From Tetramitus jugosus (Eukaryota; Protista; Heterolobosea), in assembly GCA_937625935.1 (NCBI GenBank), contig OW569373.1:409357-473356 (forward strand): a stretch of DNA of 64,000 bases, written 5' to 3'. A program made the position numbers and the translations under genes. Numbering within the stretch: the stretch's first letter is position 1; each line of letters opens with the position of its first letter. Below, in pieces: positions 22,154 through 52,500 of this stretch. The notes beneath the pieces were generated by a model, which worked only from the letters and a program-made list of their open reading frames with translations, was not told the origin of the DNA and ran no database searches.

Positions 22154-22330
22154 TTGGTAACCAGTTCGATGTGGCATGTCTTTGTCATAGATAACTACTA
22201 TGGTAGTCTTGGTCTTGCACAAGAGATGTATGAAGAGGGCAGATACTTTTTGATGTCATGCAAGTCTGATCGTCCATCAGATACCTTCAAGAACTTTGGG
22301 ATGCAGGGAGTGGACAAGTTTGATTATGCT
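22154..22330 (+). mobile_element. piggyBac-like transposase fragment
   Basis: HVFVIDNYYGSLGLAQEMYEEGRYFLMSCKSDR matches the piggyBac DN(Y/W)(Y/F)xS catalytic region. Confidence 0.6.
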
Positions 22331-22414
22331 GTAATTTCAAGTTATTCAGCTGTAATCGACATCCCACCCGACGGATTATCGGCATCCTACAACTCATCAA
22401 TTCGAAACAAATAG

Positions 22415-22720: not shown

Positions 22721-23174
22721 CCAGGATTGTGTAAGTTCCACACCTACTTCCTGTTCCTGGAGAGTTGTAAAATATTTAGCCTTTCTAAGATGGAAATGAA
22801 CAATTCATAAAAACTATTTCAGTTAGCAAAAGGTAAATCGAGGATTGCACAGAGGGTTTATTGAAAAGGTTTTGGATCGGTGGGTCACTCATCTTTGTTT
22901 TTGTGGTTAAGAAACCTTCCGACGATGCATATGATTGCAAAATGCACCAAGGATAAGGTAAAGGGGCGGTGTGTTTCGTTGCTCCACATGCAAGGCTGGA
23001 GTATTTTTGTCGAACATACAAACTCTGGTGCGCCTTGAATGTGCCTATCGTTTTCATCATAAATTATTGGATGTGAGACACAATAGTCAGCAAATTACCT
23101 TTGAGAAAATGTGTGTTTATGAAAAAATGTGACGGACCATTTACAATCTCCTGAATAAATTTTACTATGATAAT

Positions 23175-23290
23175 GCATCGTGATCTGGAGAAGTCATGAG
23201 AGTTGCATGTGGTGGCAACATTCAGTTCTTTATTTCGTCAGAAGCAAAATGAATCTCTAGAATTCCCGAGGAATCTACTGTGTTGTCAAT
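23175..23290 (+). pseudogene. Inverted, decayed copy of the last exon of the RCC1 gene; continues at 25884-25945 beyond the transposon
   Basis: ATGAGAGTTGCATGTGGT...TTCGTCAGAAGCAAAATGAA...GAGGAAT..ACTG..TTGTCAAT matches the reverse complement of 16130-16250. Confidence 0.8.
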
Positions 23291-23691
23291 AGGTCCTTTA
23301 TTCGCGAGAATGCTTGTTCTTCTTTGGTCTTCCTTTTGTTGGAATCCCCACAAAGAAATGAAAAAAAAGTATCTTATTCGCTCAACAATTTATTTTTGAA
23401 GGTTCAAAAACCACATTGCATTTTTTTTTTTTTTTTTACTATGATGAGGATCAGAATGGTGAGGTGGAATATCAGCCACAGTGGTGAGTACTCTCTCATG
23501 ACCAATATGATTGTATGACGCAAATGTACCGACTGTGCTGTGCTGGAACTAGTGAGTGACCGTAGGAGCGGGCTCTGGCACGGCTTAAATATCGACCCTT
23601 GCACTTACTCGTAGATCCAGCACAGCCGATTCACAAATGCACATTCAATCATCCAGTGTCATCTGTACAGTGCACCACAAAAACCTCAAGG

Positions 23692-24756
23692 TCAGCAGTA
23701 ATGACCCAAACCTTTTTTCCACATAAACATCCCACATGCCACAAACACACAACCAGTCAGTAGGGCATGATTGTGTCTAAACTCTGTGCTCAGTGACCTG
23801 CATGTTTTAATAAAGCAATTCACATGTTCAACTACTATCTGCTCAGACCTTGTCACCCTCAAAAATTCACGACAACCGTCGCCGTGAATCATGTTGCTTT
23901 TCAACCCTGCAACGACATAGTCCACATTCTGGAAGCCGGGATCACCCAAAGCAAAGTTTTGTCCTTCTTCATTGCAAATACGTTGGAACAAGCCACATCG
24001 CCTCGCACATGCCGAATCCGACAATCTTCCTGGATAATTAGTGCTAAAAGCAATGATGTTGCCATCGAAATCCACAAGCAACAACGTTTGAATCCAGTGA
24101 CCATTCTTATCGTTGCGATACCATCTGTGTTGTGCAGCAGACGGTTTCTGAATCATATGTGCAGTCCCATCAATAACAAATATGATGCGCTGACTGACAG
24201 ACGAAGATAAGTCACTTAGCTTTTTGTTAGGAATATATTGTATAAAGTGTTCAACCATATAAGGGATCGTTGCGTTGATACATTTGGAAACAACATATTC
24301 CGAGACGCCAAACTCGGATGATAGAATAGAATATCTCGGGTACTGGATGATCCAGTACATTGTCAATAGGATCTGGTTTTCAAAAGTGAGGCATTTGGAT
24401 TCATCACTCATAATGAGTTCAAATCTTCGCATTGCTCCAACAATCTCGTCAAACTCATTCTGAGTAATGTGGAGTAGCTGCTTGAACTGGCGATCGGAGC
24501 CAGAAGACCATCTATTGTAAACATCGTTTCCCTTGTACGACTGCCTCCTCTTGTTCTTGACCACACCGCGTCCAAGGCCATGATTTGTTTGGGATCTTCT
24601 CATGGCTGATCGCCCATAATCAATCGACTCTTCACTCAAGCATGAAAGGAGAAGTAAGATTGTTGCCGCCTTCACCTTTTTGTTGCTGTTCATTGTTTTG
24701 TTGAAGACGAGGTTGACTTCAACAAAAGCTTTGAAAACCAAACCAAGAAAAAACAT
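23692..24756 (-). CDS. Harbinger/IS5-like DDE transposase (ATG start probably MNSNKK at ~24693)
   Basis: HTH region (LSSEFGVSEYVVSKCI), FVIDGT, WYRNDKNGH, PGRLSDS, LGDPGF, IVVEHVNCFIK. Confidence 0.9.
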   Translation of the reverse strand: MFFLGLVFKAFVEVNLVFNKTMNSNKKVKAATILLLLSCLSEESIDYGRSAMRRSQTNHGLGRGVVKNKRRQSYKGNDVYNRWSSGSDRQFKQLLHITQNEFDEIVGAMRRFELIMSDESKCLTFENQILLTMYWIIQYPRYSILSSEFGVSEYVVSKCINATIPYMVEHFIQYIPNKKLSDLSSSVSQRIIFVIDGTAHMIQKPSAAQHRWYRNDKNGHWIQTLLLVDFDGNIIAFSTNYPGRLSDSACARRCGLFQRICNEEGQNFALGDPGFQNVDYVVAGLKSNMIHGDGCREFLRVTRSEQIVVEHVNCFIKTCRSLSTEFRHNHALLTGCVFVACGMFMWKKGLGHYC

Positions 24757-24762
24757 CTCGAC

Positions 24763-25764
24763 ATGTTCACAACCGATATCAGCGCTGCACTACTTAGTGT
24801 ACGATCGACAACATCATCACAACAATCATTACCTGGTATCTCATCATCACCACCATCAGCACCATCAAACGGTGCCAGTCAATTAGACCAGTCATCATCA
24901 AATCAGTCACAGGATTCTCGAGTATCTGATGCTCTTGGATTCCCTTCAGATGATGAGGATTTACTTGATAAGGCTATTTCTCCCGTTACACTCAGAAGTT
25001 CTAAATCTCCTCGTCAACCGGTCGTTCGGATCAATAAAAAATGGTCGCGCATTCTTTGTTCCGCATATGTCATGTGCGATCTGAAAATGGATTCGCTGTT
25101 CCGAGAAAATCGCGTTCGAACCGTCATGGCCCAAATAAAGAAGGCTATGGAGGAGAAGACAAAACAGCCTGTCGACGAAGAGACCGTGAAATTGAAGATT
25201 CAAAATCACATCTATTCAAAGAACACAGCCAGAAATGAGAAACAGGGGAACAGGTTGGGAACGAAGAAACGAAGCGCTGTCATTGCCGGATTGAATGAAG
25301 ATACCTCCGAGGACGAGGTTGATATTGTGCCCGATGTGGTTCGACCCCTGAGTGATCTTGAGCAACTGCTCGAAGATGGAGAGGATGATCATGCGTCGTC
25401 ATCCGTTGACAGTGAAACAATCCGAACAGCAGATAATTTCTTGGAGTTCTCTCGACAGGAGAAATCGAACACCCAAATTAGGAATGAAGCGATCTCCGAG
25501 AAACGAGGCGAGAAAATTTCTCTGTCAAACAAGATCAGGCGCCAAGAGGAATCTCGCGACAGAATGGAAGAGATGAAGACCATGGTCATGGCTTCATGTA
25601 TGAGAATTCTTGAAGGTGGTCAAGCGACCACCACAGAAGATGAATTTTCGTCCAGGCTTTCAAGGATTGAGCAAGCCCACAAGGACACTCAAAGAGATGT
25701 TGTTGCTATCAGGCAGTTGATGGACCGCTTGTTGCAACACTTGGATGGCGAAGAACAACAATAA
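24763..25764 (+). CDS. Second ORF of the transposon (putative DNA-binding partner with C-terminal coiled coil)
   Basis: Intact 333-aa ORF between the TIRs, divergent from the transposase; helical core INKKWSRILC...VKLKIQN; Myb/SANT assignment not verifiable by eye. Confidence 0.7.
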   Translation: MFTTDISAALLSVRSTTSSQQSLPGISSSPPSAPSNGASQLDQSSSNQSQDSRVSDALGFPSDDEDLLDKAISPVTLRSSKSPRQPVVRINKKWSRILCSAYVMCDLKMDSLFRENRVRTVMAQIKKAMEEKTKQPVDEETVKLKIQNHIYSKNTARNEKQGNRLGTKKRSAVIAGLNEDTSEDEVDIVPDVVRPLSDLEQLLEDGEDDHASSSVDSETIRTADNFLEFSRQEKSNTQIRNEAISEKRGEKISLSNKIRRQEESRDRMEEMKTMVMASCMRILEGGQATTTEDEFSSRLSRIEQAHKDTQRDVVAIRQLMDRLLQHLDGEEQQ

Positions 25765-25957
25765 ATTGAATGGAACCTTCCACTTTATTTTACAACGAAT
25801 AAGATCTGCAGAACCATCCCCAACAGCTTGGAAGATTTTGGGTGCCCAAAATCTTGTCAAACAAAATTCAGAATAAAAGCCCTAATGGCGACATTACCAT
25901 CTGTGTTGGTCCCTGGAAAATGAAGGTACTGTTCCCTGAATACTGCTGATGTATCGT

Positions 25958-29514: not shown

Positions 29515-31827
29515 ATGACAACAACAATTCACAACCTTGGATTTCCTCGTATTGGAGCTAAACGCGAGCTCAAGAGTGCAGTAGAAGCCTATTGGGCAGG
29601 TAAATTATCTGCTGTTGAGCTGGAGGCAGTTGGCGCTGAATTGCGTAAACGACATTGGCAACAACAAGCAAGCTCAGGAGTTCAGAAGATTCCTGTTGGT
29701 GATTTTGCCTGGTATGATCAGATCTTGGAGTGGTCAACAACAATTGGTGCTATTCCAAAGCGTTTCGGACAAGATGAAAAAGAACCAGTTTCTATCGACA
29801 CACTGTTCAGAATGGGTCGTGGAAGAGCTCCAACTGGTACACCAGCAGCTGCTTGTGAGATGACCAAGTGGTTTGATACCAACTATCATTTCATCACTCC
29901 AGAGATCTGGTCTGGTCAGAAGTATAGACTTGCGCGCGATGACCTCTTCAAGCATGTTTCAGAAGCTCAAACAGATGGACACAATGTCAAGGTTGTCATC
30001 CCAGGACCTCTTACTTGGCTTTGGTTTGCCAAGGGAGATGAATTTGAAGGTAATTCCGATGCAACTAAGCTATCCCTGTTGGATAATCTGTTACCAGTTT
30101 ACTCTGAGGTGTTGAAGCGTTTATCTGGACAAGGAGTGGAATGGGTTCAAATTGATGAGCCAATTTTGATTCTTGATCTTCCTTTGGAATGGAGAGATGC
30201 ATTCTCGAGAGTGTACAACAGTTTCTCTGAGTTATCAGGTATTAAACTACTTGTCGCCACCTACTTTGGAGGACTGAGAGATAATATTGACCTCGCACTA
30301 TCATTGAAGGTTAATGCGTTGCATATTGATGCAGTGAGAGATAGAGAACAACTCAATCAAGTTGTTGAGAAGATTGGAGCAGGTAAGATTCTGTCTGTTG
30401 GAATAATCGATGGAAGAAATATTTGGAGAACTGATTTGGATTCAGCTCGCTCAACATTGCTTGTAGCAGCTGAAAAACTTGGAGATCGTCTGTGGATAGC
30501 TCCATCTTGTTCTTTGCTTCATGTACCAGTCGATCTCTCTTTTGAGAATGAATTGGACGAAGAAGTTAAGTCTTGGTTGAGTTTTGCCATTCAGAAAATA
30601 GAGGAATTGTCTCTGTTGGGTTCATACTTGGATGGAGGTTTGAATGTTTCAGAGGAGGTATCTTCAAAAGTGTTAACACAACGAAATGCGTTAAACTCTC
30701 GTTGCTCTTCGAGCAGAACACACAATCCAGTTGTGAGAGAAAAGGTGGACAGTATCAAGTCGATTTCATTGAATCGTGTTGACTTCAGTCAAAGACGCTC
30801 TGCTCAGCAGAAGAAGTACAATCTTCCTCTCTTCCCCACAACAACCATTGGTTCATTCCCACAAACGGCTGATATCCGATCTCTTCGTCGTCGGTGGAAG
30901 AATGGTTCCCTTAACACCAAGGATTATGAAGCTTGTTTGCGCAAAGAAGTTGCACAAGTAATCGGCTTACAAGAAGAAATTGGATTGGATGTTTTGGTTC
31001 ATGGTGAGCCTGAGCGTAATGATATGGTCGAATACTTTGGAGAATTGCTCGATGGATTCGCATTCACTAAGAATGGTTGGGTTCAAAGTTATGGATCACG
31101 TTGCGTGAAGCCGCCAATTATCTTCGGTGACATCTATCGTCCTTCTGCTATGACTGTTGAATGGTCATCGTATGCTCAATCTCTCACAAGTTTGCCAGTA
31201 AAGGGAATGTTGACCGGACCAGTTACTATGCTCCAATGGTCATTTGTGAGAGATGATCAACCAAGAGAATTCACTTGCAAACAACTCGCTATTGTTTTGA
31301 GAGAGGAGGTTCTGGATCTGGAGAAGGCTGGAATTAGTATTATTCAAATCGATGAACCAGCGATCAGAGAAGGACTCCCATTGCGTAAATCAGATTGGGA
31401 ACACTACTTACAATGGGCAGTTGATTGTTTCAAGGTGACAACATCCGGTGTTCATGAAGAGACTCAAATTCACACTCATATGTGCTATTCTGAGTTCAAT
31501 GACATAATTGAATCAATTGCGGCAATGGATGCTGATGTGATCACCATTGAAACATCAAGATCCAACATGGAGTTGCTCAAAGTGTTCGAAAAGTTCTCAT
31601 ATCCAAATGAAATTGGACCTGGTGTCTATGATATCCATTCTCCAAATGTTCCAACTGTTGATTGGATGGTTCAATTGATCAAGAGAGCTACTTCCTTCTT
31701 GCCAAAGGAGCAAATATGGGTGAATCCTGATTGTGGATTGAAAACCAGAGGTCCTGTCGAAACCAAAGAGGCGTTGGTTGCCATGGTCGAAGCAGCTAGA
31801 CTGTTGAGGAAAGAATTTACTAACTAA
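29515..31827 (+). CDS. metE: Cobalamin-independent methionine synthase
   Basis: LGFPRIG, EMTKWFDTNYH, PTTTIGSFPQT, HGEPERNDMVEYF, KGMLTGPVT, Zn ligands IHTHMCY and WVNPDCGLKTR; intronless. Confidence 0.98.
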   Translation: MTTTIHNLGFPRIGAKRELKSAVEAYWAGKLSAVELEAVGAELRKRHWQQQASSGVQKIPVGDFAWYDQILEWSTTIGAIPKRFGQDEKEPVSIDTLFRMGRGRAPTGTPAAACEMTKWFDTNYHFITPEIWSGQKYRLARDDLFKHVSEAQTDGHNVKVVIPGPLTWLWFAKGDEFEGNSDATKLSLLDNLLPVYSEVLKRLSGQGVEWVQIDEPILILDLPLEWRDAFSRVYNSFSELSGIKLLVATYFGGLRDNIDLALSLKVNALHIDAVRDREQLNQVVEKIGAGKILSVGIIDGRNIWRTDLDSARSTLLVAAEKLGDRLWIAPSCSLLHVPVDLSFENELDEEVKSWLSFAIQKIEELSLLGSYLDGGLNVSEEVSSKVLTQRNALNSRCSSSRTHNPVVREKVDSIKSISLNRVDFSQRRSAQQKKYNLPLFPTTTIGSFPQTADIRSLRRRWKNGSLNTKDYEACLRKEVAQVIGLQEEIGLDVLVHGEPERNDMVEYFGELLDGFAFTKNGWVQSYGSRCVKPPIIFGDIYRPSAMTVEWSSYAQSLTSLPVKGMLTGPVTMLQWSFVRDDQPREFTCKQLAIVLREEVLDLEKAGISIIQIDEPAIREGLPLRKSDWEHYLQWAVDCFKVTTSGVHEETQIHTHMCYSEFNDIIESIAAMDADVITIETSRSNMELLKVFEKFSYPNEIGPGVYDIHSPNVPTVDWMVQLIKRATSFLPKEQIWVNPDCGLKTRGPVETKEALVAMVEAARLLRKEFTN

Positions 31828-32660: not shown

Positions 32661-33719
32661 ATGACACACAGCATCTCCCCAAGAAACAAACAATCATCAG
32701 GATCAATAGGAAAAGATAGGGACTTGCACAGAGTTACTTTCAAGCTGCTCCTTCTAAATAAACGTTTGAGAAGTCGGAATGAACAATTAAAGAGAGAAAA
32801 CTTCCATCTGCAAGTTCGAGTCAAGGAATGCGATCCATTGGAAAGCGCCAAAACAACCGAGATGATAGAAAAACTTCATCATATAGCGACTAATCATCAT
32901 TTCTTGACTTTTCTGAACAATTGTGTTGATTCGACTCAGAATCCCATGTACAACGTGGGCCAAGAAGATAAAAACCTTTTGGATAATCATTCATTGGACG
33001 AACAAAACAAGTCTGCGGCAAAGGAGAAGAATTATCAAGCAATTATTGATGAGAGAGCACTCAATGATAGTTCAATCGAATCTCGAGGTTTGGATGATGG
33101 AATAGATCATATCCGACCGAGAGACACAAGAGAACAATTCGATGAATTGATGAGTTCAATATCTGACCTTCAGTCTCTGATTGTGCAACAGCTAGATTCG
33201 TCTTGCCAATCCGTTGAGAAGAAAAGGAGAAAGATTTACAGTAGGCTCGTTGACTCTTTGTTCGATCCTGGTATCTGGAAAGTGTTGAACAGTGCAATGA
33301 CTCGTAAGAAGACGACAAAACATTGTGTTGTAAAACTGATTCACCAACAAAGGGGGGGAATGACCAACGATAAGGACAACCAATTGGATTACCTCGCTTC
33401 CCATGTTGAAAACTATCTTATCAGATTAATAGAGGATGAGTTTGGTCAAGAGGCTCCAGGTGAGATAAAAGAAAGCATCAGAGAGTGCTCTGCTCTTTCA
33501 ATACGATTGGCATGTTACTTGATTATGTGCAAACCGAAAATGAGTATGATAATGCCCAAAAGAGGAGATACATTTAATTCAGATAAACATGAGAATGCCT
33601 CCTATGAATGTGATGTAATCGTCCAATCATTGAAAAGACCAGGGTTAGTATGCATCAGTGATAATAGAGTGTTCACCAAAGCACTAGTTGAATCAGAAAT
33701 TCGGAAGATTACCGTATAA
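32661..33719 (+). CDS. Coiled-coil protein with GrpE-like C-terminal domain, type A1
   Basis: DERALNDSS, SLFDPGIWK, CKPKM..GDTFNSDKHE..LKRPGLVC..DNRVFTKALVE; paralog of three neighbours. Confidence 0.7.
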   Translation: MTHSISPRNKQSSGSIGKDRDLHRVTFKLLLLNKRLRSRNEQLKRENFHLQVRVKECDPLESAKTTEMIEKLHHIATNHHFLTFLNNCVDSTQNPMYNVGQEDKNLLDNHSLDEQNKSAAKEKNYQAIIDERALNDSSIESRGLDDGIDHIRPRDTREQFDELMSSISDLQSLIVQQLDSSCQSVEKKRRKIYSRLVDSLFDPGIWKVLNSAMTRKKTTKHCVVKLIHQQRGGMTNDKDNQLDYLASHVENYLIRLIEDEFGQEAPGEIKESIRECSALSIRLACYLIMCKPKMSMIMPKRGDTFNSDKHENASYECDVIVQSLKRPGLVCISDNRVFTKALVESEIRKITV

Positions 33720-33897
33720 TCTTTCGGTCTATCAAGATAAGAAACTAAAGTGTACTCGACTGGAGATCCTGCAAATTAGCAAATTTCCAAAAATCCACCA
33801 ACATCGGAAAAATTTTACAAGGAACCACCAGACTTGACACCAGGAATTGTAACATGTAAACCAACAAACCAAACCAAAAGCAAAAACACGAACAGCC

Positions 33898-35202
33898 ATG
33901 ACAACAAAAAATTATCGACCCACACCTACGAAAGCAGAACTAAAAAAAGAGGAGAAAACACCAATAAATAAGAAGTCATTACCTGAAGAGAAGGAAGAGA
34001 TCTCAATGCAGGCCAAGATTGAAGAATTATCGAGAGGGAAGGAAGAACTTTCAAAAAAGTTGGAAAAACTGACAAACAGAAATGAAGAATTACTGAAAGA
34101 AAGGGAAAACTTGGGTTCTAGATGTGATCAACTCGAAGAGAAGCTTCTTTTGTGTTCTGTAAATTCTGGATTTGTTGAATTTGTCAAGACCAACCAAGTA
34201 AAAAGAGTTGAAAGTTTAGAGAAACAAGTTGAGGAGTTGAAGAAAACGAATGAAACATTAAGAGCAGATATTGGAAAGAAAAACTCGAACAAGAAATGTC
34301 AAGAATTGCAGAATACCCTTAACATCCTTCAAAGATCAATGGACGAACTAAAGAAGGAGATTGAGGAGAGAGAAAAAACCTCAAGAAGGGAAAGGGAACA
34401 ACTCGAATCACAAATGAAGAATCAAAGTCTAACCTTTCATGCTGAAAAAGTCGGACTGTTAGAAGAGAAAGAAGCATCCCATCTCCTTTGCGAACAAAAA
34501 GACAAGGAAATAGCTGAACAAAAGCAACTACTCATAAATGAGAGAGCTCGTAATGACAGTTCCATAGGTAGTCATTGCTCCAGCAATGGAGAAATCAAAA
34601 TTCCTCTGGTTAGAGAAGTATTTGAGGAAGCGGTCAATTCTCTTTCTGAATTACTCACTTCTTTCTCCAGTTCCTATATTGGTACTGATGTCTGTAGTTT
34701 CCAAAAGAGCAAGAAGAATTTCCACCAGAAAATGATTGTTTCGCTCTTTGGCGAAGGATTATGGAAGATAGTAAAGAAAAAAGAGAAGCGAACAGAAATG
34801 AGAATCTCTAGTATTTTGACAGGAAAGGAGGGAAATGAAGATGAAAAGAAGATTTTGGAAACATCTCTGATGTCAACAATTGAGACTACTATTTATCGTT
34901 TCATTGAAGCAGAATTTCAATGGATGGTTCAAAGATCTGATGAGATCCAAACATGCATCAAGGCTTGCGCTCAACACGCATTACTCCTGGCTACCCATAT
35001 GACTCTTTGTGAGCCCAAAATGGGAGTGATAGTACCAAAATTTGGTAAGAAAGAGACTTTTAATCCTGAAAAGCATGAAGATGCTTCAGGCACCCACCAA
35101 ATGATTGTCAGTTTTACAAAGAGACCAGGTTTGATATGTACAATTGATAACAGAGTTGTAACAAGAGCATCAGTCGAGACTGTCCTAAAGAATTTAGAAT
35201 GA
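33898..35202 (+). CDS. Coiled-coil protein with GrpE-like C-terminal domain, type B1
   Basis: Long heptad region; NERARNDSS, SLFGEGLWK, CEPKM..FNPEKHEDAS..TKRPGLIC..DNRVVTRASVE. Confidence 0.72.
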   Translation: MTTKNYRPTPTKAELKKEEKTPINKKSLPEEKEEISMQAKIEELSRGKEELSKKLEKLTNRNEELLKERENLGSRCDQLEEKLLLCSVNSGFVEFVKTNQVKRVESLEKQVEELKKTNETLRADIGKKNSNKKCQELQNTLNILQRSMDELKKEIEEREKTSRREREQLESQMKNQSLTFHAEKVGLLEEKEASHLLCEQKDKEIAEQKQLLINERARNDSSIGSHCSSNGEIKIPLVREVFEEAVNSLSELLTSFSSSYIGTDVCSFQKSKKNFHQKMIVSLFGEGLWKIVKKKEKRTEMRISSILTGKEGNEDEKKILETSLMSTIETTIYRFIEAEFQWMVQRSDEIQTCIKACAQHALLLATHMTLCEPKMGVIVPKFGKKETFNPEKHEDASGTHQMIVSFTKRPGLICTIDNRVVTRASVETVLKNLE

Positions 35203-35371
35203 CCTGAAAGCAGCAACATATGCTCCAATAATAAAAAATGGTCCTCTCTTCCCACTAACAATTATTCTTTACAACAAGTTATGAACTTTGATGGTGGTTG
35301 CTCAATAAAGTTGTAAGGTCACTCTCAATCTCCCAGCCAGTCGTCAGTTTTTTTGAATTGTTTGTACTTTT

Positions 35372-37753
35372 TTATTCCAATCTCCCAGCCAGATGAGTAT
35401 AGGTTTGTTTCATCTCCGTCAGATTCAAACCTGAAGAAGAAAAGGAACCTCCTCCAATATCTGCAAAGAGCCGTAGTAATGCATGATTGCTAGATGATCC
35501 CACTCCAACCGTATGCAACTTAAAACCTAGATGAGAGTACGTCGTCATCATGTTGTGTAGAGTGGATGAGGATCCTCCATCACTACATTCACCATCGGTC
35601 ATAAATAAGGCGATAGGTGTGTATCCATGAGGAGATCTTGATAAAATAGATTCGATGGATTTCATAGGTGACAGAAAATCGGTTCCACCATCAGCGTTGT
35701 GATTCATCATGTAATCTCGGACTAAACTGGTACTTAATAGTTTTTGTTCAAAACAAATACTAGCAGAACTCTGGTAGAGAACACAGGATACGATATCATT
35801 GGAAGCCGATCTTTGATCTAAAAAGGCATAGCAAGCTTCATAAAGAGCTCCAACACGGTTTCCATGACTGTACTTAAGGAAGTCGAGGGACGGTTGGACA
35901 TCTCTTCCACCCATCGAGCCAGAAATATCATTAGCAAAAATGACGTGATAGTTATGTTCGGGTTCTTGTGGTGGCACTTCTGTTGTTTCAAAAAGTCCTC
36001 CTTCAAACCTGATCACAGCCTCATACTTCTTACCAGAATTCTTCTCGATTGCATTCAGTTTAATTTCTGATTTTCCAAAGAACATTGTGACATCAACAGC
36101 TCTGTTGATACCCCCAGTTGTATCACTCATGTCAACGATAATCTCACCAATCTTTTTGCCAGCGGGTTCATCCACATAAGTCATGTTTGTTACAAGAGTT
36201 CCGAAAACAGCGATCGACATCGATTTTTGATTTGCAAATGAAGCTTTGTAAATCCTGGAAATTCCCTTATCGAACTCAACTTCTTCTCCAATTGTAACAT
36301 ACTTGTCAAAACAATCCATGCAATAATCCTTCGCTCCAATAGTTTTCTTCTTTTGAGAGTTGTGGGTTCCAAGAATAAATGGTTTTAAAGAAGAACAGCC
36401 ATACGTCATTCTCATTCTTCTAGAGTAAATTATACTAGGATCAGCACCAAGATATAAAGCCCCATCCACAATTGCCTCTCCTGGTTCAGGAGGTACAACT
36501 ATTCCTTTTTTCACTCTTGTACCGAACTTGTCCCTGACTAACTTCTGGAGGACTACCGATCCTCCAAAACCTCCAACAATAAATACATAGTCAAAAGGGG
36601 AATTCGTTTCACTGATACATGATGAGAATTGATCTTCTATCAGTGAAGAGATTTGATCGAGGGTGTCGACGTAAATCTTGGTCATATGATCTGAGGGCAA
36701 AATGATTGTATTACAGTCAGAATCAAAGTTCGCACTCTTCACCCCATTCTTTTTGAGAAGTGAATTAAGAACGCCGGGTGCTGTGATGAAAGCTTTCTCC
36801 CCCAAATCCTTCGTTCGACACTTAGTGCTCTCCCAATTACTCATTAACTCAAAGTGCTGAATGGGATACTTTCTTTTGAAATCGTTAATCAATTGTTCTC
36901 CAAACAATTCACACAAAAGAGTTTCAAACTTCCTATCAAGAACAGAGGAACCGCATACTCCTCCAGTACCACTTGTAATCTCCTTCAACTTTCCTTTGGT
37001 ATAGGTATGAGCTGTCAAATCAACAGTTCCACCTCCCGCATCCAAAACCAAGAACTTTTCGCCTTCTCTCAAAGGACTTCCTTGGCGCTTCAATTGCATC
37101 ATACAATAGACAGCAGCAGCCTCTGGTTCCAGCACTAACATAAAAGCATCCTCTGGAGGATCCTCGACTTCAATCATCCCAGCTCTGTATGCAGCCTTAC
37201 GCATAGCCGCCTTCTCAGAATCTTTCCAAATGGCAGGAATTGTCAAACACCAAATAATCTCACCCGGTTCAATTTCTTTTCCAATCTTTCTTGTTAGGTC
37301 CTCTTTGATCTTGTCAAACAATAACGTGAGATAATCAACAATTACATCATTTGCGTTTTTTTCCGCAGTTCCACTCGTGTCTTTCACGATATGATCGTGA
37401 GTCTGAAGTCCCATCTTGAAAAACTCAAATAGACGCAAGGTCTTGTCCTCATCACCATCCAACATTTCTTTCCAAGCAGTAAAACCCCAATATTCAGGTT
37501 CATCGTCCTCATTGTACGCAATCTTGGTCAGAGTTTTACAATATTTCACTGGTGAGTCCTCCCAGTTCAATTCCTTGTTGCTCTTCATGCATGATTCTCC
37601 AGGGAAACCATATGAATAACCTATTTAGAAAGATTTAGTGATGATGTCCTCCAATACTTGTCAAAAGAATAATTGATTACCTGTTCGTGATGTTCCAAAA
37701 TCAACTGCGATCACAATGGTTTTGGTTACTGTAATATTATCGATGATAGACAT
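35372..37753 (-). CDS. HSPA12-like atypical Hsp70 fused to a C-terminal vWA domain (H1); intron 37621-37680
   Basis: Exon 1 MSIIDN..IAVDFGTSRTG; WCLTIPAIW, EPEAAA, DAGGGTVD, VGGFGGS; vWA DISGSM, GGTDF, FMTDGE, HTVGVG. Confidence 0.9.
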
Positions 37754-37948
37754 TTTTGATGTTTGAAAGAAACCAATATGAGAAAAATGACCTCACAGCA
37801 AAAATCTTGACAAGTGATTGTTGTAACACTGCAGAAAAGAGAAAAGAGGGAGGCTTCCTTCGTTTTTTGACAGATGACGCCCACCATCGCAAAAGTGAAG
37901 GGAAGAAAAATGGATTTTTCGTTTGGTGGGAAACCAAAAAACATCAAC

Positions 37949-39706
37949 ATGGCTGACAAGAGTATTATTGACGAAAGTAGTGGTAATCACAAGAAAGTGG
38001 TTGTTGGTGTGGACTTTGGAACTAATGGAACTGGTTTTTCTTTTTCCTTTACTGGAGATACTGGAAAAACTGTTCATAATTTTCAGGATTGGGATGACTG
38101 TGGAGATGCGAGGTATTGCAAAAATCTGAGTTCTATTCTATATGAAAGATCAGAGGAGATTGCTTCTTCTTGGGGTTACACTGCTGAAAGAGATTATTTA
38201 ACCCAAGATGAAGATTCTGATTCTGATTCTGATTTAGATGTGGCCTCTTCTGTCCATCAGTCACCTACTCAGAAAGTTCTTTTTAAACAATTCAAGATCC
38301 ATATGAAAAAGAATCCTCACGGTAACATTTCCGAAAACGGTCTCGAACTTCCACTAACCAAGGTTATTTCAGATTACTTATACTTTGTTAAGGAGTTGAT
38401 AATGGATAGGGTTACAACATTGGACGCGACCATTGATATCAAGGATATTAGATGGTGTTTTTCTGTACCCGTTGTTTGGGAAGAAATTCACAAGAAACAA
38501 TTAAGAAAGATTGCATTTGAAGCTGGATTTATTGACGACGAAAATTGCCAGGAGAATGATTTTTTGATGGTTTCGGAACCAGAAGCTGCCGCAATTTATT
38601 GCATTGACAATGATATGAAAACAGGAGCAAAGAGTTTGAAACCTGGACAGTTGATTATGATTGTTGATGCTGGAGGAGGTACAGTAGATCTTACAGTCCA
38701 TACTCTCGATACACTGCAACGATTGAAAACAGTGACTATTCCTTCTGGTAACACACTTGGTTCCACAGCATTGGATGATGAATTCCTTTCCATTTTGAGA
38801 GAAAACTTTGGTGAAAAGAACATGGATAACTTCAAAAAAGAGAATCCCTTGATGTTCTTGGAACTCATGTCAAACTGGGAGAAAGCGAAGAGAGATGCAA
38901 AAGATTTCACAAAATCTCTCAAGTTGAATGTTCCTCCCAAATTAATGAAGATAGGAAGAGGATCACCTCTGATGAATGAGGACACCGGAAAGTTAATTCT
39001 GTCTGTCACTCATGTTGAAAGAATTTTCAAGACACCAATCAATGATACTATCCAACAGGTAAAGAAGCAACTATCTGAAACCAAGAAGACGGCTAGAAAA
39101 CCAGTTGATTACATCTTTTTGGTTGGTGGATTCGGACAAAACGAAATATTGAGAAAAAGACTGAAAGAAGAATGTGAGAAAGGTACTACAAAAATTGTGA
39201 TGCCCAAGTTTTGTGGTGAAGCAGTTGTGAACGGTGCTTGTATGCTCGGAAGAGATCCCAGTCTAATTCAAACAAGAAGATCGAGGTACTCATATGGTAT
39301 AGAAGTAGAACAACCTTTCAATCCTTCTATTCACGAAAGTGGACGATGTGTAGCCAAACACGGTGAATATTTATGTACCGGGGTATTCAAGACTTATGCA
39401 AAGAGAGGCCAAGAAGTTGAAACTGACAAGACACAGAGACATTCTTTTTTCATCGCACCCAATCAGGCTGAAGTTGAAGTTAAGATCTATTTCTCACCAA
39501 AAGAAAGAGTAAAGTATGTGGATGAAGTGAATGTTGCTCAGTTGCTTATTATCCCGATAAAGGTACAACCTAAGAATGGGACACAAGAAGTTGGAGTTTT
39601 AATGAAGTTTGGAAAAGCAGAGGTCATCATTGAAGTTGAACTAGAGGATGGCACAGTTACACAAGGAAAAGCGAAATTTTCCTCTGACAGTTTGAAGTTG
39701 TGCTGA
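37949..39706 (+). CDS. HSPA12-like atypical Hsp70 (H2); start probably MADKSIID
   Basis: GVDFGTNGTG, WCFSVPVVW, EPEAAA, DAGGGTVD, VGGFG, RRSRYSYG; no helical lid or EEVD. Confidence 0.9.
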   Translation: MADKSIIDESSGNHKKVVVGVDFGTNGTGFSFSFTGDTGKTVHNFQDWDDCGDARYCKNLSSILYERSEEIASSWGYTAERDYLTQDEDSDSDSDLDVASSVHQSPTQKVLFKQFKIHMKKNPHGNISENGLELPLTKVISDYLYFVKELIMDRVTTLDATIDIKDIRWCFSVPVVWEEIHKKQLRKIAFEAGFIDDENCQENDFLMVSEPEAAAIYCIDNDMKTGAKSLKPGQLIMIVDAGGGTVDLTVHTLDTLQRLKTVTIPSGNTLGSTALDDEFLSILRENFGEKNMDNFKKENPLMFLELMSNWEKAKRDAKDFTKSLKLNVPPKLMKIGRGSPLMNEDTGKLILSVTHVERIFKTPINDTIQQVKKQLSETKKTARKPVDYIFLVGGFGQNEILRKRLKEECEKGTTKIVMPKFCGEAVVNGACMLGRDPSLIQTRRSRYSYGIEVEQPFNPSIHESGRCVAKHGEYLCTGVFKTYAKRGQEVETDKTQRHSFFIAPNQAEVEVKIYFSPKERVKYVDEVNVAQLLIIPIKVQPKNGTQEVGVLMKFGKAEVIIEVELEDGTVTQGKAKFSSDSLKLC

Positions 39707-39774
39707 GCGCAGTTTCGAACTGACAGTACCTAATCAAATCAATAAAAATCAATGACACTCTTTATTCTGTTGCA

Positions 39775-40665
39775 TTATTCCAGTTTTCTTGCAACAGTCT
39801 CCACAGACGCTCTAGCAAACACTCGATTGTCCACTCTGCAGATAAGCCCAGGTCTCTTTACGAATGTAATTACTATCTCCTGTTCGAAAGAAGCATCTTC
39901 GTGCTTGTCAGGATTAAACGATTCTCCATTCGCCCCACTTTTGGGTACAAAAACCGTCATTCGAGGCTCAGAGAGTATTAATGTGCCAGCAAGGTGTAAT
40001 GCATTTCTTGTGAGTGTGTTAATACAAGCAAGTATTTCGACATCTAATCCTATCTCTAGCCCAATCTCTTCACGAATCAACCTCTCAACACTACTGTTCA
40101 AGACACGAAGTAAAGATTCGCAATATCTTTCACTTCCTTTGATTTCTTCTAAAGATATCATTCTCGAAATCTCTGTTTTGCTCATTTTCTTACTTTCCAT
40201 TGTTCTCTTCAACAACTTCCAAATTCCTTCACCAAACAAGGATTCTATCAACCTCTGGTGACACGCTCTCTTGCGCTCTACAAAATCAGAAGTACAGAAT
40301 TCAAACTTTGAGGCAAGAGTTGAAAGAAAGTCAGATAGAGAATTAACTGCTTCATCAAAAACATCTGTCACTTGATTGCTAACACTGCCCAAAGAACTAT
40401 CATTTCTTGCTCTTTCATTAACAATCAATTGGTTTTTCTCATGTATTATCTTGTCTTTCTCTTCTACAATTGTTTTCAATTGTTTTTCCATCAGAATTCT
40501 ACTCTCCTTGAGTTCTCTTCTGAAATTCTCGTTCTGATCGTACAACACTCTCTTTTCGTTTTCCAATCTCTCAATTTCTCTTTTCTTCTCTTGAATTTCA
40601 TTCTCAAGTTCCTCAACTTTTTTTTCATTGCTTTTGTTGTTGCCCCATCCAATCAGAGTAAACAT
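39775..40665 (-). CDS. Coiled-coil protein with GrpE-like C-terminal domain, type B2
   Basis: NERARNDSS, VFDEAVNSLS, SLFGEGIWK, FNPDKHEDAS, VKRPGLIC..DNRVFARASVE. Confidence 0.72.
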   Translation of the reverse strand: MFTLIGWGNNKSNEKKVEELENEIQEKKREIERLENEKRVLYDQNENFRRELKESRILMEKQLKTIVEEKDKIIHEKNQLIVNERARNDSSLGSVSNQVTDVFDEAVNSLSDFLSTLASKFEFCTSDFVERKRACHQRLIESLFGEGIWKLLKRTMESKKMSKTEISRMISLEEIKGSERYCESLLRVLNSSVERLIREEIGLEIGLDVEILACINTLTRNALHLAGTLILSEPRMTVFVPKSGANGESFNPDKHEDASFEQEIVITFVKRPGLICRVDNRVFARASVETVARKLE

Positions 40666-40757
40666 GTTTCTTGCTTTTTGTCGAAATCAAAACTTTATCT
40701 GAGAAAATCAGTTACAATTTCTTTTCTCCGTGACACTACGAATTTTTTTTGGACAAC

Positions 40758-41768
40758 TCAGGTGGATTTGTTGGAAGTTTCAACAAAAGCTTTGCAGAAA
40801 ACTTTGTTGTCCTTTTTGCATATTAATCCAGGTCTCTTCATCAACTCAACAACCATTCTGAATTCTGAAGTTGCATCCTCGTGTTTGTCCGGATTGAATT
40901 CACTGCCTTTCTTTGGTGAAATGATTCCCATTTGAGGTTCAGATACCACCAGGTGAGCCGCGAGAAGAAGAGATTGGCGAGAGCACTCTTGAACCAAAGG
41001 ATCTATCATTTTCATCTCTTTACCAACTTCTTTGTCAATCATAGTTTGGATATGGACTCCAATGTGTGTCTGAAAGAGACATTCCAATTCCTTCTTATCC
41101 AGTCCCTTTTCATCACCTTGTTTTCCAGACAATACCATTGCAACACCGTGTTTGGTTACCTTCTTGGTGTCCATTGGCTTCTTCAAAATCTTCCATATAC
41201 CGGGATCAAGGAGTGATTCAAGAAGCTTTTTGTAAATATTCTTCACTATCCTTTTAGAATCATCTAGAGAATCGGAGCCAAGTTCATTCCTCAAAGTACT
41301 TTGTAGATCTGTAATTGAGTCCATCAACAAGTTAAATTGCTCCTGGACTATTTGAGGCCTGATCGAACCGTCGTTCGAATTGCTAGAAACAATTGAACTG
41401 TCATTACTTGCTTTTGCATTGATTATTGCTTGATTTTTCTCGGCTATTATCTTATCTTTTGCTTCAATAGTAGTTTTCATTGCTTCACACTCTTTCAAAA
41501 GTTGATCTCTTTCGGTAGTACTCGTCTTGCATAAAATTTGGTATCTAGAGTTTAGATCTTGTATATCCGCTTCCTTCTCATTCAATACTTGTACCTGCTT
41601 CTCTTTTTCCTCCTTCAATTGTTGCAGTTGTTGTTGAAAATCTTGAATTTGTTTTTGTTGCTCTTGTAGTTTGAAAGAGTCGTCCGGAGCTGATGGTTCT
41701 AACTCGATTTCTGGAGTCTCCTCCTGCTTTTGAGTCACCCTTGTTCTTCTTGACAGTGATTGACCCAT
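40758..41768 (-). CDS. Coiled-coil protein with GrpE-like C-terminal domain, type A2; N-myristoylation motif
   Basis: MGQSLS start; NAKASNDSS, IRP..EQF, SLLDPGIWK, FNPDKHEDAT, MKRPGLIC..DNKVFCKAFVE. Confidence 0.72.
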   Translation of the reverse strand: MGQSLSRRTRVTQKQEETPEIELEPSAPDDSFKLQEQQKQIQDFQQQLQQLKEEKEKQVQVLNEKEADIQDLNSRYQILCKTSTTERDQLLKECEAMKTTIEAKDKIIAEKNQAIINAKASNDSSIVSSNSNDGSIRPQIVQEQFNLLMDSITDLQSTLRNELGSDSLDDSKRIVKNIYKKLLESLLDPGIWKILKKPMDTKKVTKHGVAMVLSGKQGDEKGLDKKELECLFQTHIGVHIQTMIDKEVGKEMKMIDPLVQECSRQSLLLAAHLVVSEPQMGIISPKKGSEFNPDKHEDATSEFRMVVELMKRPGLICKKDNKVFCKAFVETSNKST

Positions 41769-41979
41769 GCTGAAGTTGATTTGTTATTTTTCTTTCAATC
41801 GTGATGTGTGTCACTTTACAACTATTTTTTTTCAGGCCTGAAATTTGAAGGTTCTCCTGTCCTGGACAGGCTTGTTTCATTCTCCGCATTTTTATCTCCC
41901 GACAACAGTTTCCGCTCCAAAAAAAAGTATGAAGTGTTCTGTGACAGCTCTCCAATGGCCAAGCACAAGAAAGGAGGAG

Positions 41980-42230
41980 AATACTTTAAATATCTTCACG
42001 GCATTCATACACTCAGCATGAAGGATCTGAATATCTCACATCTGGCATTTCCTCATTTGATTGGTATTCTCACGCTCGATATGAGAGGTTGCCATCATGT
42101 GTCTGGCTAAGCATTTGCTCATTTGGCTAGTGTTCATTCACTCAACATCAGTCGTTGCAAAAAATCACATTTAACGTGTTTCCTCATTTGTTTGGCATTC
42201 ACACACTCCTTATGGACGCTTGCGAGCTAA
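41980..42230 (+). pseudogene. Leucine-rich-repeat gene remnant
   Basis: Repeats FxHLxGIHTLxMxxC (YLHGIHTLSM, HLIGILTLDMRGC, HLASVHSLNISRC, HLFGIHTLLMDAC) with an in-frame stop and a frameshift. Confidence 0.7.
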
Positions 42231-42439
42231 GTTACTCTCCTCCAGTCAATTTTTTCAGGATCCTCCTCGAGATACACAAAAATACAGGGGGAGATATCCG
42301 CAGACTCCCTTGGTACATCTGTAGACAAGATAAGACTTTCATCGAAAGGGTGGTTGAGCATTGTGAATCCAGTTCCGTGTAGAGATACTGGTAATCGAAC
42401 ATTCCAAGTTTTCTGGCAATAGCACCTCCTAGGCCTCAG

Positions 42440-48199: not shown

Positions 48200-49470
48200 A
48201 CATTTATTACAGCAGGAGAATATCACACGACGATTTTAACACAAGATGGTCATATTTATTCTTGGGGTTGGACAGATTTTGGTGCACCTTTCTCTGTTGA
48301 CAATGTACCTGTCCGAGTGAGTATGAATGGGTTGTTAAACGAAAAGACAGTATCTCAATTTATAGTGAAATGATTTTGATATGCTTGCTTTGACCAATGG
48401 TGGAAAGTTAGGTTACCTGAAGAGTAACTATTCCACGCGGGTCAACATGAACAATGTTGATTCTGAACAAACCTTAACTAGCTTTTTCATTGGTGCAAAC
48501 ACAATGGGATTCCTTGGAGCCATATGTGAGCAAGGGTATTTTGGTTAAGAGTGTAATCTTTTCAACTGACTGCTATGATGTAGAACGCGAGGATGAAACA
48601 AGGGTCTGCTTTTGGGTGTGTTCAAATGAAAAGATGTTAAATTGATCAGTCGTATCTCGGAAGGAGCGTTCGGTGTTGTATTCGAAGGAGAGTGGAAAAG
48701 TAACACCGTGGCTGTAAAAAAGATGAAAGTATCGGATGATGAATCTTTTGTCAGACAAGTTTGCGTCATCCAAATATTCTCTACTTGTATGGATACTCTT
48801 CTGAATGATAATGGAGACAAGTTTTTGATAACGGAATTCGCTGTGAATGAATGGGAGTTTGCACAAAGTTCTTCATTCAAGCAATGTCACTCTCAAACCT
48901 TTTGATCAGAAGATGAATATCTTATGTCAGATTGCAGATACAATGGCTTATTTGCATGGAAGAAGTTCTCGAATTGTTCACAGAGACTTGAAGCCACAGA
49001 ATATTTTATTAGGTGAGAATTATCATGCCAGAATATGTGACTTTGGTTTGAGTAAAAGCAATGATACATCTTTTACAATCGGGAGATCCTACGGAACAAT
49101 TGAGTACTGTGCTACGGAGCTTTTGAAACATCGAGAACATGATGAAACGTGTGACACTTACAGTTTTGGAATTATTATGCTTGAAATTTTTATCTTGGAT
49201 GCTCCCTATTGCCAGATTTCATACTCATCAGTATTTACGCTTGGATTGGATATTGTGAGAGGATTGAGACCACCCATACAATCAAATGACTCTCAATCAC
49301 TTTTGAACTTCTTCCCAAAGAGTAACACAACGAACATGCCTTCATCCGACATTCCTTCCATTGTGCAAGATTTTTCTCCATTTCCACACGGTGTTGGAAT
49401 GCAGATGCAACCAAGCGTCTGTCATTTGAAGAAATAACAACAGAATTGGACAAAATAGAGAGGAGTAGCA
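48200..49470 (+). pseudogene. Frameshifted RCC1-repeat plus TKL kinase gene remnant
   Basis: ITAGEYHTTILTQDGHIYSWG; SEGAFGVVFEGEW..VAVKK and HRDLKPQN/DFGLSK lie in different frames; the C-lobe is also frameshifted. Confidence 0.75.
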
Positions 49471-49554
49471 AAAACTTTTAAGTTAACTTGGGACTCAAAT
49501 TTTGTTGTTCATGTCATATCTCCGCTCGTTTGACAAATCAAAAACTTGAAAAAA

Positions 49555-52500
49555 ATGGGTCAGGGTTCAGCCACCAAGTACGCTTGGGATGTCGATGAAT
49601 TATTGAGACAACATGAAAAAGAGATTCAAGTATGGAAGATGAAATACGTTCAATCTCTGACAACTATTCAGCAGATACAGAAGGAGCATAATGATTACAA
49701 ACTTGCCACAAAATCCGAAGTAGATCGTTTAGAGCAAGATAAAAGTGAATATATACAGCAGATGCAAGAGGAGCATAATGATTTCAAACTTGCCACAAAA
49801 TCCGAAGTAGATCGTTTAGAGCAAGATAAAAAAGAATTAAGTTCTAAAATACAGAACCAAGCGAATGAAATTAATCGTTTATCAGGAAAGCATAGTCAAA
49901 CTATGAGAAATTTGAATCAGATAAAGAAAAAGTACGATACTTGCAAGGAGGACACGGAAGTTGCAATCAAGAAATTAACCAAAAAGAAGAACAAATTAGA
50001 AACGGAAATGCAAGATCTGAGACGCCAAATGGAGGAGCAAATGCATGAGATCCATAACTTGAAAGAAAGGGGTGAAGGGTATAACATGATGGATGCCTTT
50101 CCTAAAGAGATAAGCGAGGTCATACACATTGAAACTGATTGGATTGCAAACAACAAGTTTGAAGCTCTACGATCACTCTACAGTGTGCACAATGTTTTGA
50201 AAGAACGATCATCTGGGAAAAGATTATCAGGTGATGAAGTAGATGAGAAATTGGTTATCCAAATTGAAGACAATAGAAAGAAACATATGTCCATAAACGC
50301 AAGCATAATGGATGCGAAACCAATTGAAAGAAAAAGAGTGATAGAAGAGAGGTCACACAATCTGAGAGATCTATTAATGAAATTGGATAAGCTTGAATCA
50401 ATTCATACATCGAGAATGGATAAATTATTGTGTCAACTCCAGCATTTAACAACTTATACTCATGTTCAGAGTGGAACAAAGAAAAAAGCTGATTATGAAT
50501 TCGACAAGTTTTATGGTAATGATGCTCAATATAATGAATTGCTGTCTCGAAAGGAGGAATATAAGAAACAGCTAGTGAAACTTGTTAGAAAAGCTTGTTC
50601 TTATTCCGATTGTTTGAAGAAAAACGGTCAAGAGATGATGAAATTAACTGAGGATGAACCAATATTGGATAGTATAGAGAAAGAAGTTAGTCAGGTCAAC
50701 GAAGAGATTGAAAATCTTTTGATCTTACAGGATTCGTATGGAGGATTGAAGCAACAAATGAAAGCATTCGAAAGAGATTCTTGTGAAGTTCAAACACTCA
50801 TGGAGCAACTATTGACGATCACTAAAAAAGAGAAGCAGATGAATTTGGATTGCAGGAAAATTGATCTCGAGATTGACACAATAGCTTGTGATTTAGATGA
50901 CGAAGATACAGAGGAGAAGATGAAAAATTTGAACCGAATGAAAGAGAGAGAAGAAAGACTTCTTATGGAAGTCAAAAAACAAAAACAACGACTGGAAATA
51001 GCATTCCACAACTATGGAGATTACGGTGAGGTTAGGACATTATTACCAAAATCCAAGTCAACTGGAGTCAAACTAAAGGACTATATATTTGTGAGAGATG
51101 TTGGTGGAAGACATAGTAATGTGAAACTATATCGAAATTACAAAGAGGAATTTGTAGTCTTAAAGAAATTTTCTATTGACCATAATCGTAGGGCACTTAT
51201 GAGAGAGTCCTCAAGGATTAATTCTCATCATCATTTGATTCTACCGATTAACAATATTTTTTATCACGATGACGCGGCGTATGTTGAAACTCCGTTCATT
51301 GAAGGAGGTACGCTTCGAGATTGGATGAACAATGGTAAAGAAAAAACAGCAATTGAAATTCAAAATATTATTCGTCTCATTGCTCAAGGAATTCAATATT
51401 TGCACGATCGTGGTACCATTCATTGTGATTTGAAACCAGAGAATATCTTAGTGAAAAAGAATGTATATGATGAAACATGCATTCCAATTCTTTTTAATTT
51501 TGGGATGAGTCGAAACAAAGGTATGAGTAACGATTCAATGATGCAAGGAGGTGAGAAAAACAAGTACATGAGTCCAGAGAGATTAGTAAACAATGAAGAA
51601 CCAACGACAAAAGCTGATATTTGGTCTCTAGGTGTGATTGCCTTAGAGTTAATATCTTTTCCCAATGATGTCACGACACTCATCGCAACTAATTTTAATA
51701 ACACATCATTCTTGAATACTCATCAATGGAATGCCCAGTTGCAGTCAGATACGTCATTGTATGAATTATTAGTGAAAATGTTCAACGAAAGAGTTAAAGA
51801 CAGATATGATATAAATGATGTTCTTCATCATGCTTTTTTGAACAAAGTGATTGATCACAATATAAGCAGTCAAGAATTAAGACCTGATTCCAAGAGTAGA
51901 ATTAATCAAATCAAACTATTTATTGCTGAAAAATCTCGTTCTACCCAGCGGGACTCAAAATTGTTAAGAGTTCAAGATCATCCCAATTGGATTAATTCGA
52001 CTTTGAACTGCTTTTATACAATGACTTCTAGTAATATGATGAAGAGGTTAGTTGTTACATTCGAGGGTGAAGAAGGAATTGATGGCGGCGCACTGACAAC
52101 TGCATTTTATGCAAGAATATTTAACAATATTGCAGAGAAGTTGTTCGAGAAGGTTGACAACAATAATCTATTTGTACCGATTTGTGATGATAAAAACGCA
52201 AAGCAACAAATCAAGAATGAAAGATTGTTCGAAAGTATAGGTAAAGTGTTGATCAAAATGATATTTGATCAAAGAACAATGTCTATATGTTTAGCACCAT
52301 ATTTTATGAGATATTTACTCTGTCCTGATGACAAGGAGAGTGAGTTCGAGCATTCAATGATACATATGAAAGATGTTGATATGGTTGATGCAGAATTTGG
52401 ACGCAATATGAGACAACTACTGGCGATGGATGATATTGGAGCAATGTGTTTAGATTTTGAAGAGATAAATTACACTGATAAGAGAGATGTGAATAACTCG

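Follow-up and report, generated by a model that had tools for sequence, protein, structure and literature searches.

GrpE acts as an asymmetric dimer (PMC12987570), and, according to a 2026 review (PMC13580251), no cytosolic GrpE is retained in eukaryotes; the same review gives the function of HspA12 as "presently unknown". HSP70 and GrpE are also found in the predicted GAP1-N2 GTPase conflict systems of multicellular bacteria, which sometimes include SLATT effectors (Kaur et al., 2020; PMC7159879). Here we describe a cluster of six genes in a 64,000-nt stretch of contig OW569373.1 of the heterolobosean Tetramitus jugosus (hereafter the window, to which positions without a locus label refer). 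Two of the genes, H1 and H2, encode Hsp70s assigned by sequence to the HSPA12 clade; the other four, A1, B1, B2, and A2, encode putative GrpE-like coiled-coil partners. We judge it marginally probable that the whole is an old two-component module, in which an HSPA12-clade ATPase and its own GrpE-derived partner are used in non-self recognition or defence.

Linkage of the Hsp70 and partner genes

A profile of seven eukaryotic partners was compared with 3547 bacterial open reading frames (ORFs), and the top 15 matches were all the gene directly downstream of an HSPA12-like gene. With an iterated profile, whose E-values are circular, 76 of 81 bacterial loci proved to have an A/B homologue, one per locus, as the next gene after the HSPA12-like one; as about 50 of these loci come from related actinobacteria, the ratio overstates their independence. 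The Hsp70 stop codon is at most 50 nt from the partner gene in about 60 loci. Reciprocally, a profile built from cyanobacteria only, compared with 1059 eukaryotic ORFs, retrieved only ORFs of the A/B family (best E 2e-9). A scan of GTDB yielded 174 HSPA12-like stretches; the best 80 of them are mostly from filamentous cyanobacteria and actinobacteria, with Chloroflexota, Thiotrichaceae, Planctomycetota, and Acidobacteriota also represented, and this host range is dominated by multicellular or filamentous bacteria. The first-pass annotation of the window, made from sequence alone, had proposed an operon-like module not known to be described in eukaryotes; the linkage is supported, and the bacterial two-gene loci show that the module is not confined to eukaryotes. 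Bacterial variants include a tandem protein with two HSPA12-like nucleotide-binding domains (NBDs) in a helicase-rich island and an upstream coiled-coil gene fused to an NBD (L010:10001-12964; L032:4453-7308).

Among amoebae, genes of A or B type stand tail-to-tail with genes like H2 or H1 on metagenome contigs from relatives. Naegleria fowleri has a cluster of a vWA-bearing H gene, a short H gene, and three partners in a row, and a second H pair, 80 kb away, with no partner inside 10 kb. Two H genes and two partners form the Acrasis kona cluster. In Willaertia magna three H genes were found with two weak partner candidates (hhalign E 0.0015, probability 16%); an extra small gene, actin/Hsp70-fold-like by eye, lies within the cluster (L008:6605-7703). 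At least three distant heterolobosean lineages have retained the linkage of Hsp70 and partner genes, although order and orientation have changed, and the linkage first noticed in the window is repeated in Naegleria, Acrasis, the metagenome contigs, and the bacterial loci.

In fungi, a coiled-coil gene is located head-to-head with an HSPA12-like gene in two of two loci (Aspergillus unguis, L093, and Orbilia, L094). The tails of these coiled-coil proteins are similar to the partners by eye, and their nearest Pfam-bearing atlas clusters are GIL1_IRKI_C (0.81) and MIEAP (0.77). Comparison by hidden Markov models (HMM) and hhalign gave no significant match, and the fungal linkage is suggestive, a lead only. 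In A. unguis, a sacsin-like gene and the candidate partner stand head-to-head with the HSPA12-like gene (L093:2916-9747). No partner gene was found inside 10 kb of an oyster HSPA12 gene (one locus).

Predicted structure of the proteins and history of the cluster

The sequence motifs first noted in the four partners are present, and the partners fall into classes A and B, as had been read from these motifs; the classes occupy separate branches (support 82 and 94), identity being 43% for A1-A2, 40% for B1-B2, and 35-40% between classes. None of the four proteins has a significant match to a Pfam, NCBIfam, or PADLOC family. GrpE models (Pfam PF01025 and NCBIfam) do not match the window proteins, and only 4 of 70 family members match them weakly (best E 0.0016). 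Similarly, MIEAP (PF16026) and the GIL1-IRKI C-terminal domain (PF24994) do not match the window proteins at the Pfam gathering score and match relatives weakly, an E-value of 0.5 or lower against MIEAP being reached by 9 members of the 70 (best value, 6.8e-7).

The N-terminal part of the partners is a heptad-like charged sequence with weak matches to coiled-coil Pfam families, of which only the last 30-residue helix was modelled. The conserved part of B2 was modelled confidently with AlphaFold2 (AF2) from a 70-sequence alignment (predicted local distance difference test, pLDDT, 90; predicted template modelling score, pTM, 0.87); the model shows about 145 residues folded into six helices and, after them, a small beta domain. 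In a Foldseek search of the PDB, ranks 1-11 were all taken by GrpE (best E 0.014), and in VIA-align the top rows covering both helices and head were GrpE of E. coli (Z 7.3) and Geobacillus (Z 7.2). A model of the head only (pLDDT 83) again gave three GrpE chains at ranks 1-3 (Z 4.1-4.8, root-mean-square deviation 2.7-3.4), leaving the scores at a modest level, and sequence-profile matches in the head region were to GrpE chains only (best E 0.011). Modest as each of these scores is, they agree in indicating the same family. Over the whole domain, the template modelling (TM) score of the B2 model is higher for fungal families (0.74-0.75; one of them carries a GTPase domain), plant GIL1/IRKI (0.69-0.70), and MIEAP (0.62) than for GrpE (0.44 at best, with a range of 0.27-0.44). 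Feature similarity of MIEAP and GIL1-IRKI to the partners is 0.86-0.88. Since GrpE comes first in head comparisons and the whole domain is closer to the other families, we regard the partners as GrpE-like and not GrpE proper, that is, GrpE-derived or GrpE-like proteins with a predicted enlarged helical bundle. The GrpE-like C-terminal domain of the first-pass annotation is therefore upheld by the models, as is the comparison with MIEAP and GIL1/IRKI, which share the predicted bundle and beta-wing.

The beta-wing head is the most conserved part of the partner. No natural Hsp70-partner fusion occurs among the retrieved proteins. An MGxxxS/T start was found in 5 of 26 eukaryotic partners, A2 included, vs 0 of 118 Hsp70 homologues, which suggests that a subset of partners is N-myristoylated and that some may be membrane-anchored.

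Both H1 and H2 contain the predicted nucleotide-binding motifs VDFGT, EPEAAA, DAGGGTVD, and VGGFG, and retain the phosphate-1, catalytic Lys/Glu, phosphate-2, and adenosine motifs of the Hsp70 NBD. The expected loss of the lid and EEVD is likewise seen in their sequences; the canonical DVLLLD linker is absent, with a DPSLI-type, Arg-rich stretch instead. They are not canonical DnaK (prok_dnaK score 46 bits vs cut-off 823). Their nearest named Hsp70 relatives are in Naegleria, Acrasis, and Willaertia, and oyster HSPA12A-like and fungal "actin-like ATPase" proteins match at E ~1e-30 to 1e-56; by these similarities H1 and H2 belong to the HSPA12 clade, HSPA12 being the nearest named relatives. 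No viral relatives were found in an IMG/VR scan with an Hsp70 alignment or, at E<=0.001, in BFVD. The earlier reading of H1 was correct in its motifs and had missed two features, a 60-nt intron, which places DFGT in a 73-nt exon 1, and a C-terminal vWA domain with intact residues of the metal ion-dependent adhesion site (DxSxS, T, D). H1 is under purifying selection (ratio of nonsynonymous to synonymous substitution rates, dN/dS, 0.24). Exon 2 alone was the H1 query in database searches, and the joined exons were used for local BLAST, dN/dS, motif positions, and the tree; as exon 1 has only 24 codons, the conclusions are independent of the joined model. The long-class HSPA12-like protein of A. 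kona (L009:12023-14566) has another C-terminal domain where vWA would sit; therefore the C-terminal slot of the long class appears exchangeable.

The order A1(+) B1(+) H1(-) H2(+) B2(-) A2(-) was confirmed with six intact ORFs (Table 1), H1 and H2 forming a divergent pair with a start-to-start spacing of 120 nt; a later ATG could be the true start of H2. The mirror symmetry claimed for the cluster holds for gene order but not as equivalence of its halves, as only H1 carries a vWA. The mirror has no long inverted repeat at the DNA level. A recent inverted duplication at the DNA level was rejected, the only similarities being of 36-85 nt in coding regions, at 70-86%.

In the Hsp70 tree, heterolobosean HSPA12-like proteins form one clade (99), within which a long, mostly vWA-bearing group includes H1 (88) and a short group includes H2 (88), with Naegleria and Acrasis members in each. 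In the partner tree, A and B group together (96), apart from three Naegleria proteins (96) and those of Acrasis (98). Both trees are quick ones, with support from the Shimodaira-Hasegawa-like approximate likelihood ratio test (SH-aLRT) only, and one N. fowleri sequence with an early intron was left out of the Hsp70 tree. The H1 and H2 classes are older than the lineage-specific groups of partners; therefore H1 and H2 would be the old core, around which the A-B pair was duplicated later. Duplication of an A-B-Hsp70 unit as a whole, as first proposed, is abandoned, a single inverted duplication of this unit being rejected by the two trees as the simplest history. By this phylogeny the mirror symmetry is real but secondary, and the cluster is probably a local expansion of an old two-component module.

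Other conspecific isolates (A1 98%, H1 99% nucleotide identity) differ in a block at about 33726-34900, which is replaced by a deeply divergent one, with 46-81% nucleotide identity vs 96-100% in the flanks and synonymous divergence (dS) of 0.7-1.5 vs 0.02-0.03. From the N-terminus of B1 to its head, identity is 37%, 43%, 73%, and 97%, and dS is 1.5, 1.3, 0.7, and 0.02. The pattern agrees with B1 haplotypes long kept in balance, or with conversion by a paralogous gene. A chimeric assembly is unlikely to be behind the divergent B1, the same A1-B1' junction being present in a JGI assembly and in an independent Logan assembly.

H1, H2, B2, and A2 are covered by RNA-assembly contigs from soil in three studies, these being contigs only, with no expression levels and no silent control for DNA carry-over. 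In two of the three studies cover is absent over the H1 intron and spacer bin, and the 60-nt intron was seen spliced out in a soil metatranscriptome. A1 and B1 are located on transcript-type contigs without the H1 intron; of these, L095 begins at 32651 and L096 is intron-free.

Table 1. Coordinates of the cluster genes and their parts in the window.
Feature	Position	Strand	Description
A1	32661..33719	+	352 aa; coiled-coil, helical bundle, and GrpE-like beta-wing, head ~33453-33716; class A
B1	33898..35202	+	434 aa; long coiled coil, bundle, and GrpE-like head 34927-35199; class B; N-terminal three quarters polymorphic
A1-B1 spacer and 5' part of B1	33726..34900	.	deeply diverged haplotype in its place in other conspecific isolates (L095/L096/L099)
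H1, whole gene	37753-35372	-	773 aa, two exons
H1 exon 2	35372..37620	-	HSPA12-like NBD, beta-rich C-terminal part, vWA ~35450-35944
H1 intron	37621..37680	-	60 nt, GT..AG; spliced in a metatranscriptome (X8)
H1 exon 1	37681..37753	-	73 nt; start codon and VDFGT phosphate-1 loop
H2	37874..39706	+	610 aa; short-class HSPA12-like Hsp70; non-canonical linker, no lid, no EEVD
B2	39775..40665	-	296 aa; coiled coil, six-helix bundle, and GrpE-like beta-wing 39778-40053; modelled
A2	40758..41768	-	336 aa; class A; MGxxxS N-terminus (possible N-myristoylation signal); head 40761-41015

The window is closed by a TTTGGG telomeric array (63260-64000), about 21.5 kb beyond the cluster, upstream of which lies a short duplicated subtelomeric unit with telomere-like repeats (61890-62180). 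Two genes from the cluster is an intronless, bacterial-looking gene (29515-31827, +), which by eye we take to be the cobalamin-independent methionine synthase MetE; horizontal transfer is possible. A short stretch of the B1-H1 spacer (35320-35345) nearly repeats the final codons of H1, and just outside A2 there is a degraded leucine-rich-repeat-like remnant with three 65-66 nt repeats, stops, and frameshifts (41820-42250, +). A 1167-aa protein is an unusual fusion of a long coiled coil, a protein kinase, and a HECT ubiquitin ligase (49546-53049, +), adjoined by a kinase fragment (48847-49437). Mobile-element remains occupy 19300-25800, including endonuclease-like fragments near 19700-21100 (by eye) and a Harbinger-type DDE_Tnp_4 transposase (23692-24756) with a divergent partner ORF (24763-25764).

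Possible roles of the module

In the proposed mechanism, the coiled coil would hold the partners together as a dimer. Their beta-wing would be placed between lobes IB and IIB of the NBD, in the manner of GrpE on DnaK, and the partners would control nucleotide (ADP/ATP) exchange by the linked Hsp70, no J-protein being needed. Of the partner, the variable stalk would be a sensor or specificity element and the conserved head the switch contact. A lipid anchor (N-myristoylation) on some copies would give a membrane location. In a response to non-self or in defence, the ATPase, joined in H1 to the vWA domain, would pass the signal on to effectors. We consider it likely that a partner dimer binds its cognate HSPA12-type NBD through the beta-wing and sets the nucleotide state; the conflict role, on which we are evenly divided, is only the better-supported of the possible roles. 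An obligate A+B heterodimer, proposed initially, does not agree with one partner gene in bacterial operons and two or three in other amoebae. Because bacteria carry a single partner gene, the partner may be a homodimer by default, an A+B heterodimer being a possible option where paralogues exist.

Among the 81 bacterial loci, patatin was found in 14, DUF4231/SLATT in 8, and GDPD in 6; single loci have a Schlafen-nSTAND3 gene directly downstream, a Druantia-like helicase island, or a standalone vWA gene upstream. Streptomyces loci (L049, L072, L073, L075, L077, L078, L083) share an operon of HSPA12-like, partner, unknown ORF, patatin, GDPD, and DUF4231/SLATT genes, whose gene content makes it a candidate membrane-targeting defence system. 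The immunity or non-self role suggested by the first-pass annotation thus keeps its hints, the bacterial effector neighbours and the deeply divergent B1 allele, but has no direct sign in selection or in PADLOC.

Several points weigh against a defence module with a GrpE-type switch. First, no core component matched a PADLOC 2.0 family significantly. Second, positive selection was not found on the B1 block (dN/dS 0.2-0.4, <1). Third, many bacterial loci come from Streptomyces that are related to one another, and beside most loci there is no obvious effector gene, while the window neighbours of the cluster are housekeeping genes (MetE, peroxiredoxin, phosphoesterase). Finally, GrpE is matched at modest scores (head Z 4.1-4.8; lowest Foldseek E 0.014), under the Pfam and NCBIfam cut-offs, and about 145 residues of helices replace the short helical domain of GrpE, which could block GrpE-style docking.

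The best-surviving alternative, which we hold to be possible though rather improbable, is a specialised proteostasis or stress module with no conflict role, a dedicated chaperone or assembly factor for particular clients. Cyanobacterial loci provide an example, as AAA ATPase (8 loci), radical SAM (11), and second Hsp70 (7) genes adjoin the pair, and WD40 proteins are also frequent. In loci L011-L026 the recurrent operon comprises Zn-ribbon/WD40, double AAA ATPase, Zn-ribbon coiled coil, HSPA12-like, partner, second Hsp70, coiled coil, and radical SAM genes; no description of this larger operon was found in the literature searched. The transcripts in ordinary soil samples of three studies and the purifying selection on H1 (dN/dS 0.24) also agree with such a module, and bivalve HSPA12 expansions have been read as stress buffering (PMC13580251). 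However, the patchy distribution (174 stretches in the GTDB scan), lineage-specific paralogue turnover, the divergent B1 haplotype, the effector-type neighbours, and the lack of a noticed J-domain gene and of a canonical linker or lid argue against it.

Less likely still, the partner could bind the Hsp70 as a membrane-tethered MIEAP/IRKI-like scaffold or clamp, recruiting or inhibiting the ATPase in membrane remodelling or organelle quality control, and not as an exchange factor. The closer whole-domain similarity to GIL1/IRKI, MIEAP, and fungal families than to GrpE (TM 0.62-0.75 vs 0.44), the enlarged helical bundle, and the MGxxxS/T starts, confined to partners (5/26 vs 0/118), favour a scaffold. 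However, the beta-wing, which in GrpE is the element that wedges into the NBD, is the most conserved part and is 97% identical between the divergent alleles of B1, and bacterial partners were not seen to depend on an anchor. Finally, that the linkage is a relic of a transferred bacterial operon and subtelomeric tandem duplication, with proteins no longer cooperating in the amoeba, is very improbable: the cluster is indeed subtelomeric, and one N. fowleri HSPA12 pair and one oyster HSPA12 lack a nearby partner, but linkage has outlasted rearrangement in distant lineages, all genes are intact, and the head is conserved.

A broader reading, which we regard as speculative and improbable as it stands, would make one ancient J-protein-independent ATP switch out of the HSPA12-clade ATPases and a superfamily derived from GrpE, to which the bacterial partners, amoebal A/B, the fungal families, animal MIEAP, and plant GIL1/IRKI would belong. 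Multicellular bacteria and eukaryotes would use the switch to recognise non-self or in defence, and its specificity would lie in the polymorphic coiled-coil stalk. In that case MIEAP-domain proteins would be the missing cofactors of animal HSPA12, the expanded bivalve families included. More generally, the cluster and its bacterial counterparts supply a specific candidate cofactor for HSPA12-type proteins, place a putative GrpE-derived lineage in eukaryotic nuclear gene clusters, and would tie the orphan domains MIEAP and GIL1/IRKI to the GrpE fold. The role of HSPA12 becomes directly testable, since at its smallest the bacterial module is an operon of two genes and its hosts are tractable (Streptomyces, filamentous cyanobacteria), and the divergent B1 allele is a handle on a possible self/non-self function in amoebae.

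Comparison with known systems

The GAP1-N2 systems (PMC7159879) resemble the pair in having HSP70 and GrpE genes in multicellular bacteria, a host range that recalls that of the bacterial pair. Their own features are GAP1, paired GTPases, and FNIII-repeat/DnaJ proteins; the cluster in the window lacks all of these, nor were they noticed in the families that are frequent beside the pair in the 81 bacterial loci, where no dedicated profile scan was made. With MIEAP/SPATA18 (PF16026) and plant GIL1/IRKI (PF24994), the partners share the same predicted fold over about 180-200 residues (TM 0.62-0.70), but the window proteins lack a Pfam match to either, and at the one animal locus inspected no such gene was linked to HSPA12.

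Animal HSPA12A/B and fungal "actin-like ATPase" Hsp70s have the same NBD motifs and lidless architecture as H1 and H2, whereas the linked partner and the vWA fusion distinguish the proteins described here. In the literature searched, whose coverage is incomplete, we found no cofactor for HSPA12, no description of the HSPA12-partner gene pair, and no paper naming HSPA12 together with Mieap, or two of IRKI, GIL1, DUF641, and GrpE together.

The closest likeness is to DnaK-GrpE (mtHsp70-GrpEL1/Mge1), as here, too, an Hsp70-type NBD gene adjoins a gene for a coiled-coil protein ending in a beta-wing with the pattern F.P..HE...V...PG...KA.V. In contrast to that system, the Hsp70 is of the HSPA12 clade and has neither DVLLLD linker nor lid nor EEVD, the partner, whose helical bundle is far larger, remains below Pfam GrpE cut-offs, and no J-protein gene was noticed. 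With respect to the absence of a cytosolic GrpE from eukaryotes (PMC13580251), the eukaryotic copies described here show no evident organelle presequence (by eye). The HSPA12-partner gene pair is apparently undescribed, and it is kin to the known Hsp70-GrpE pairing.

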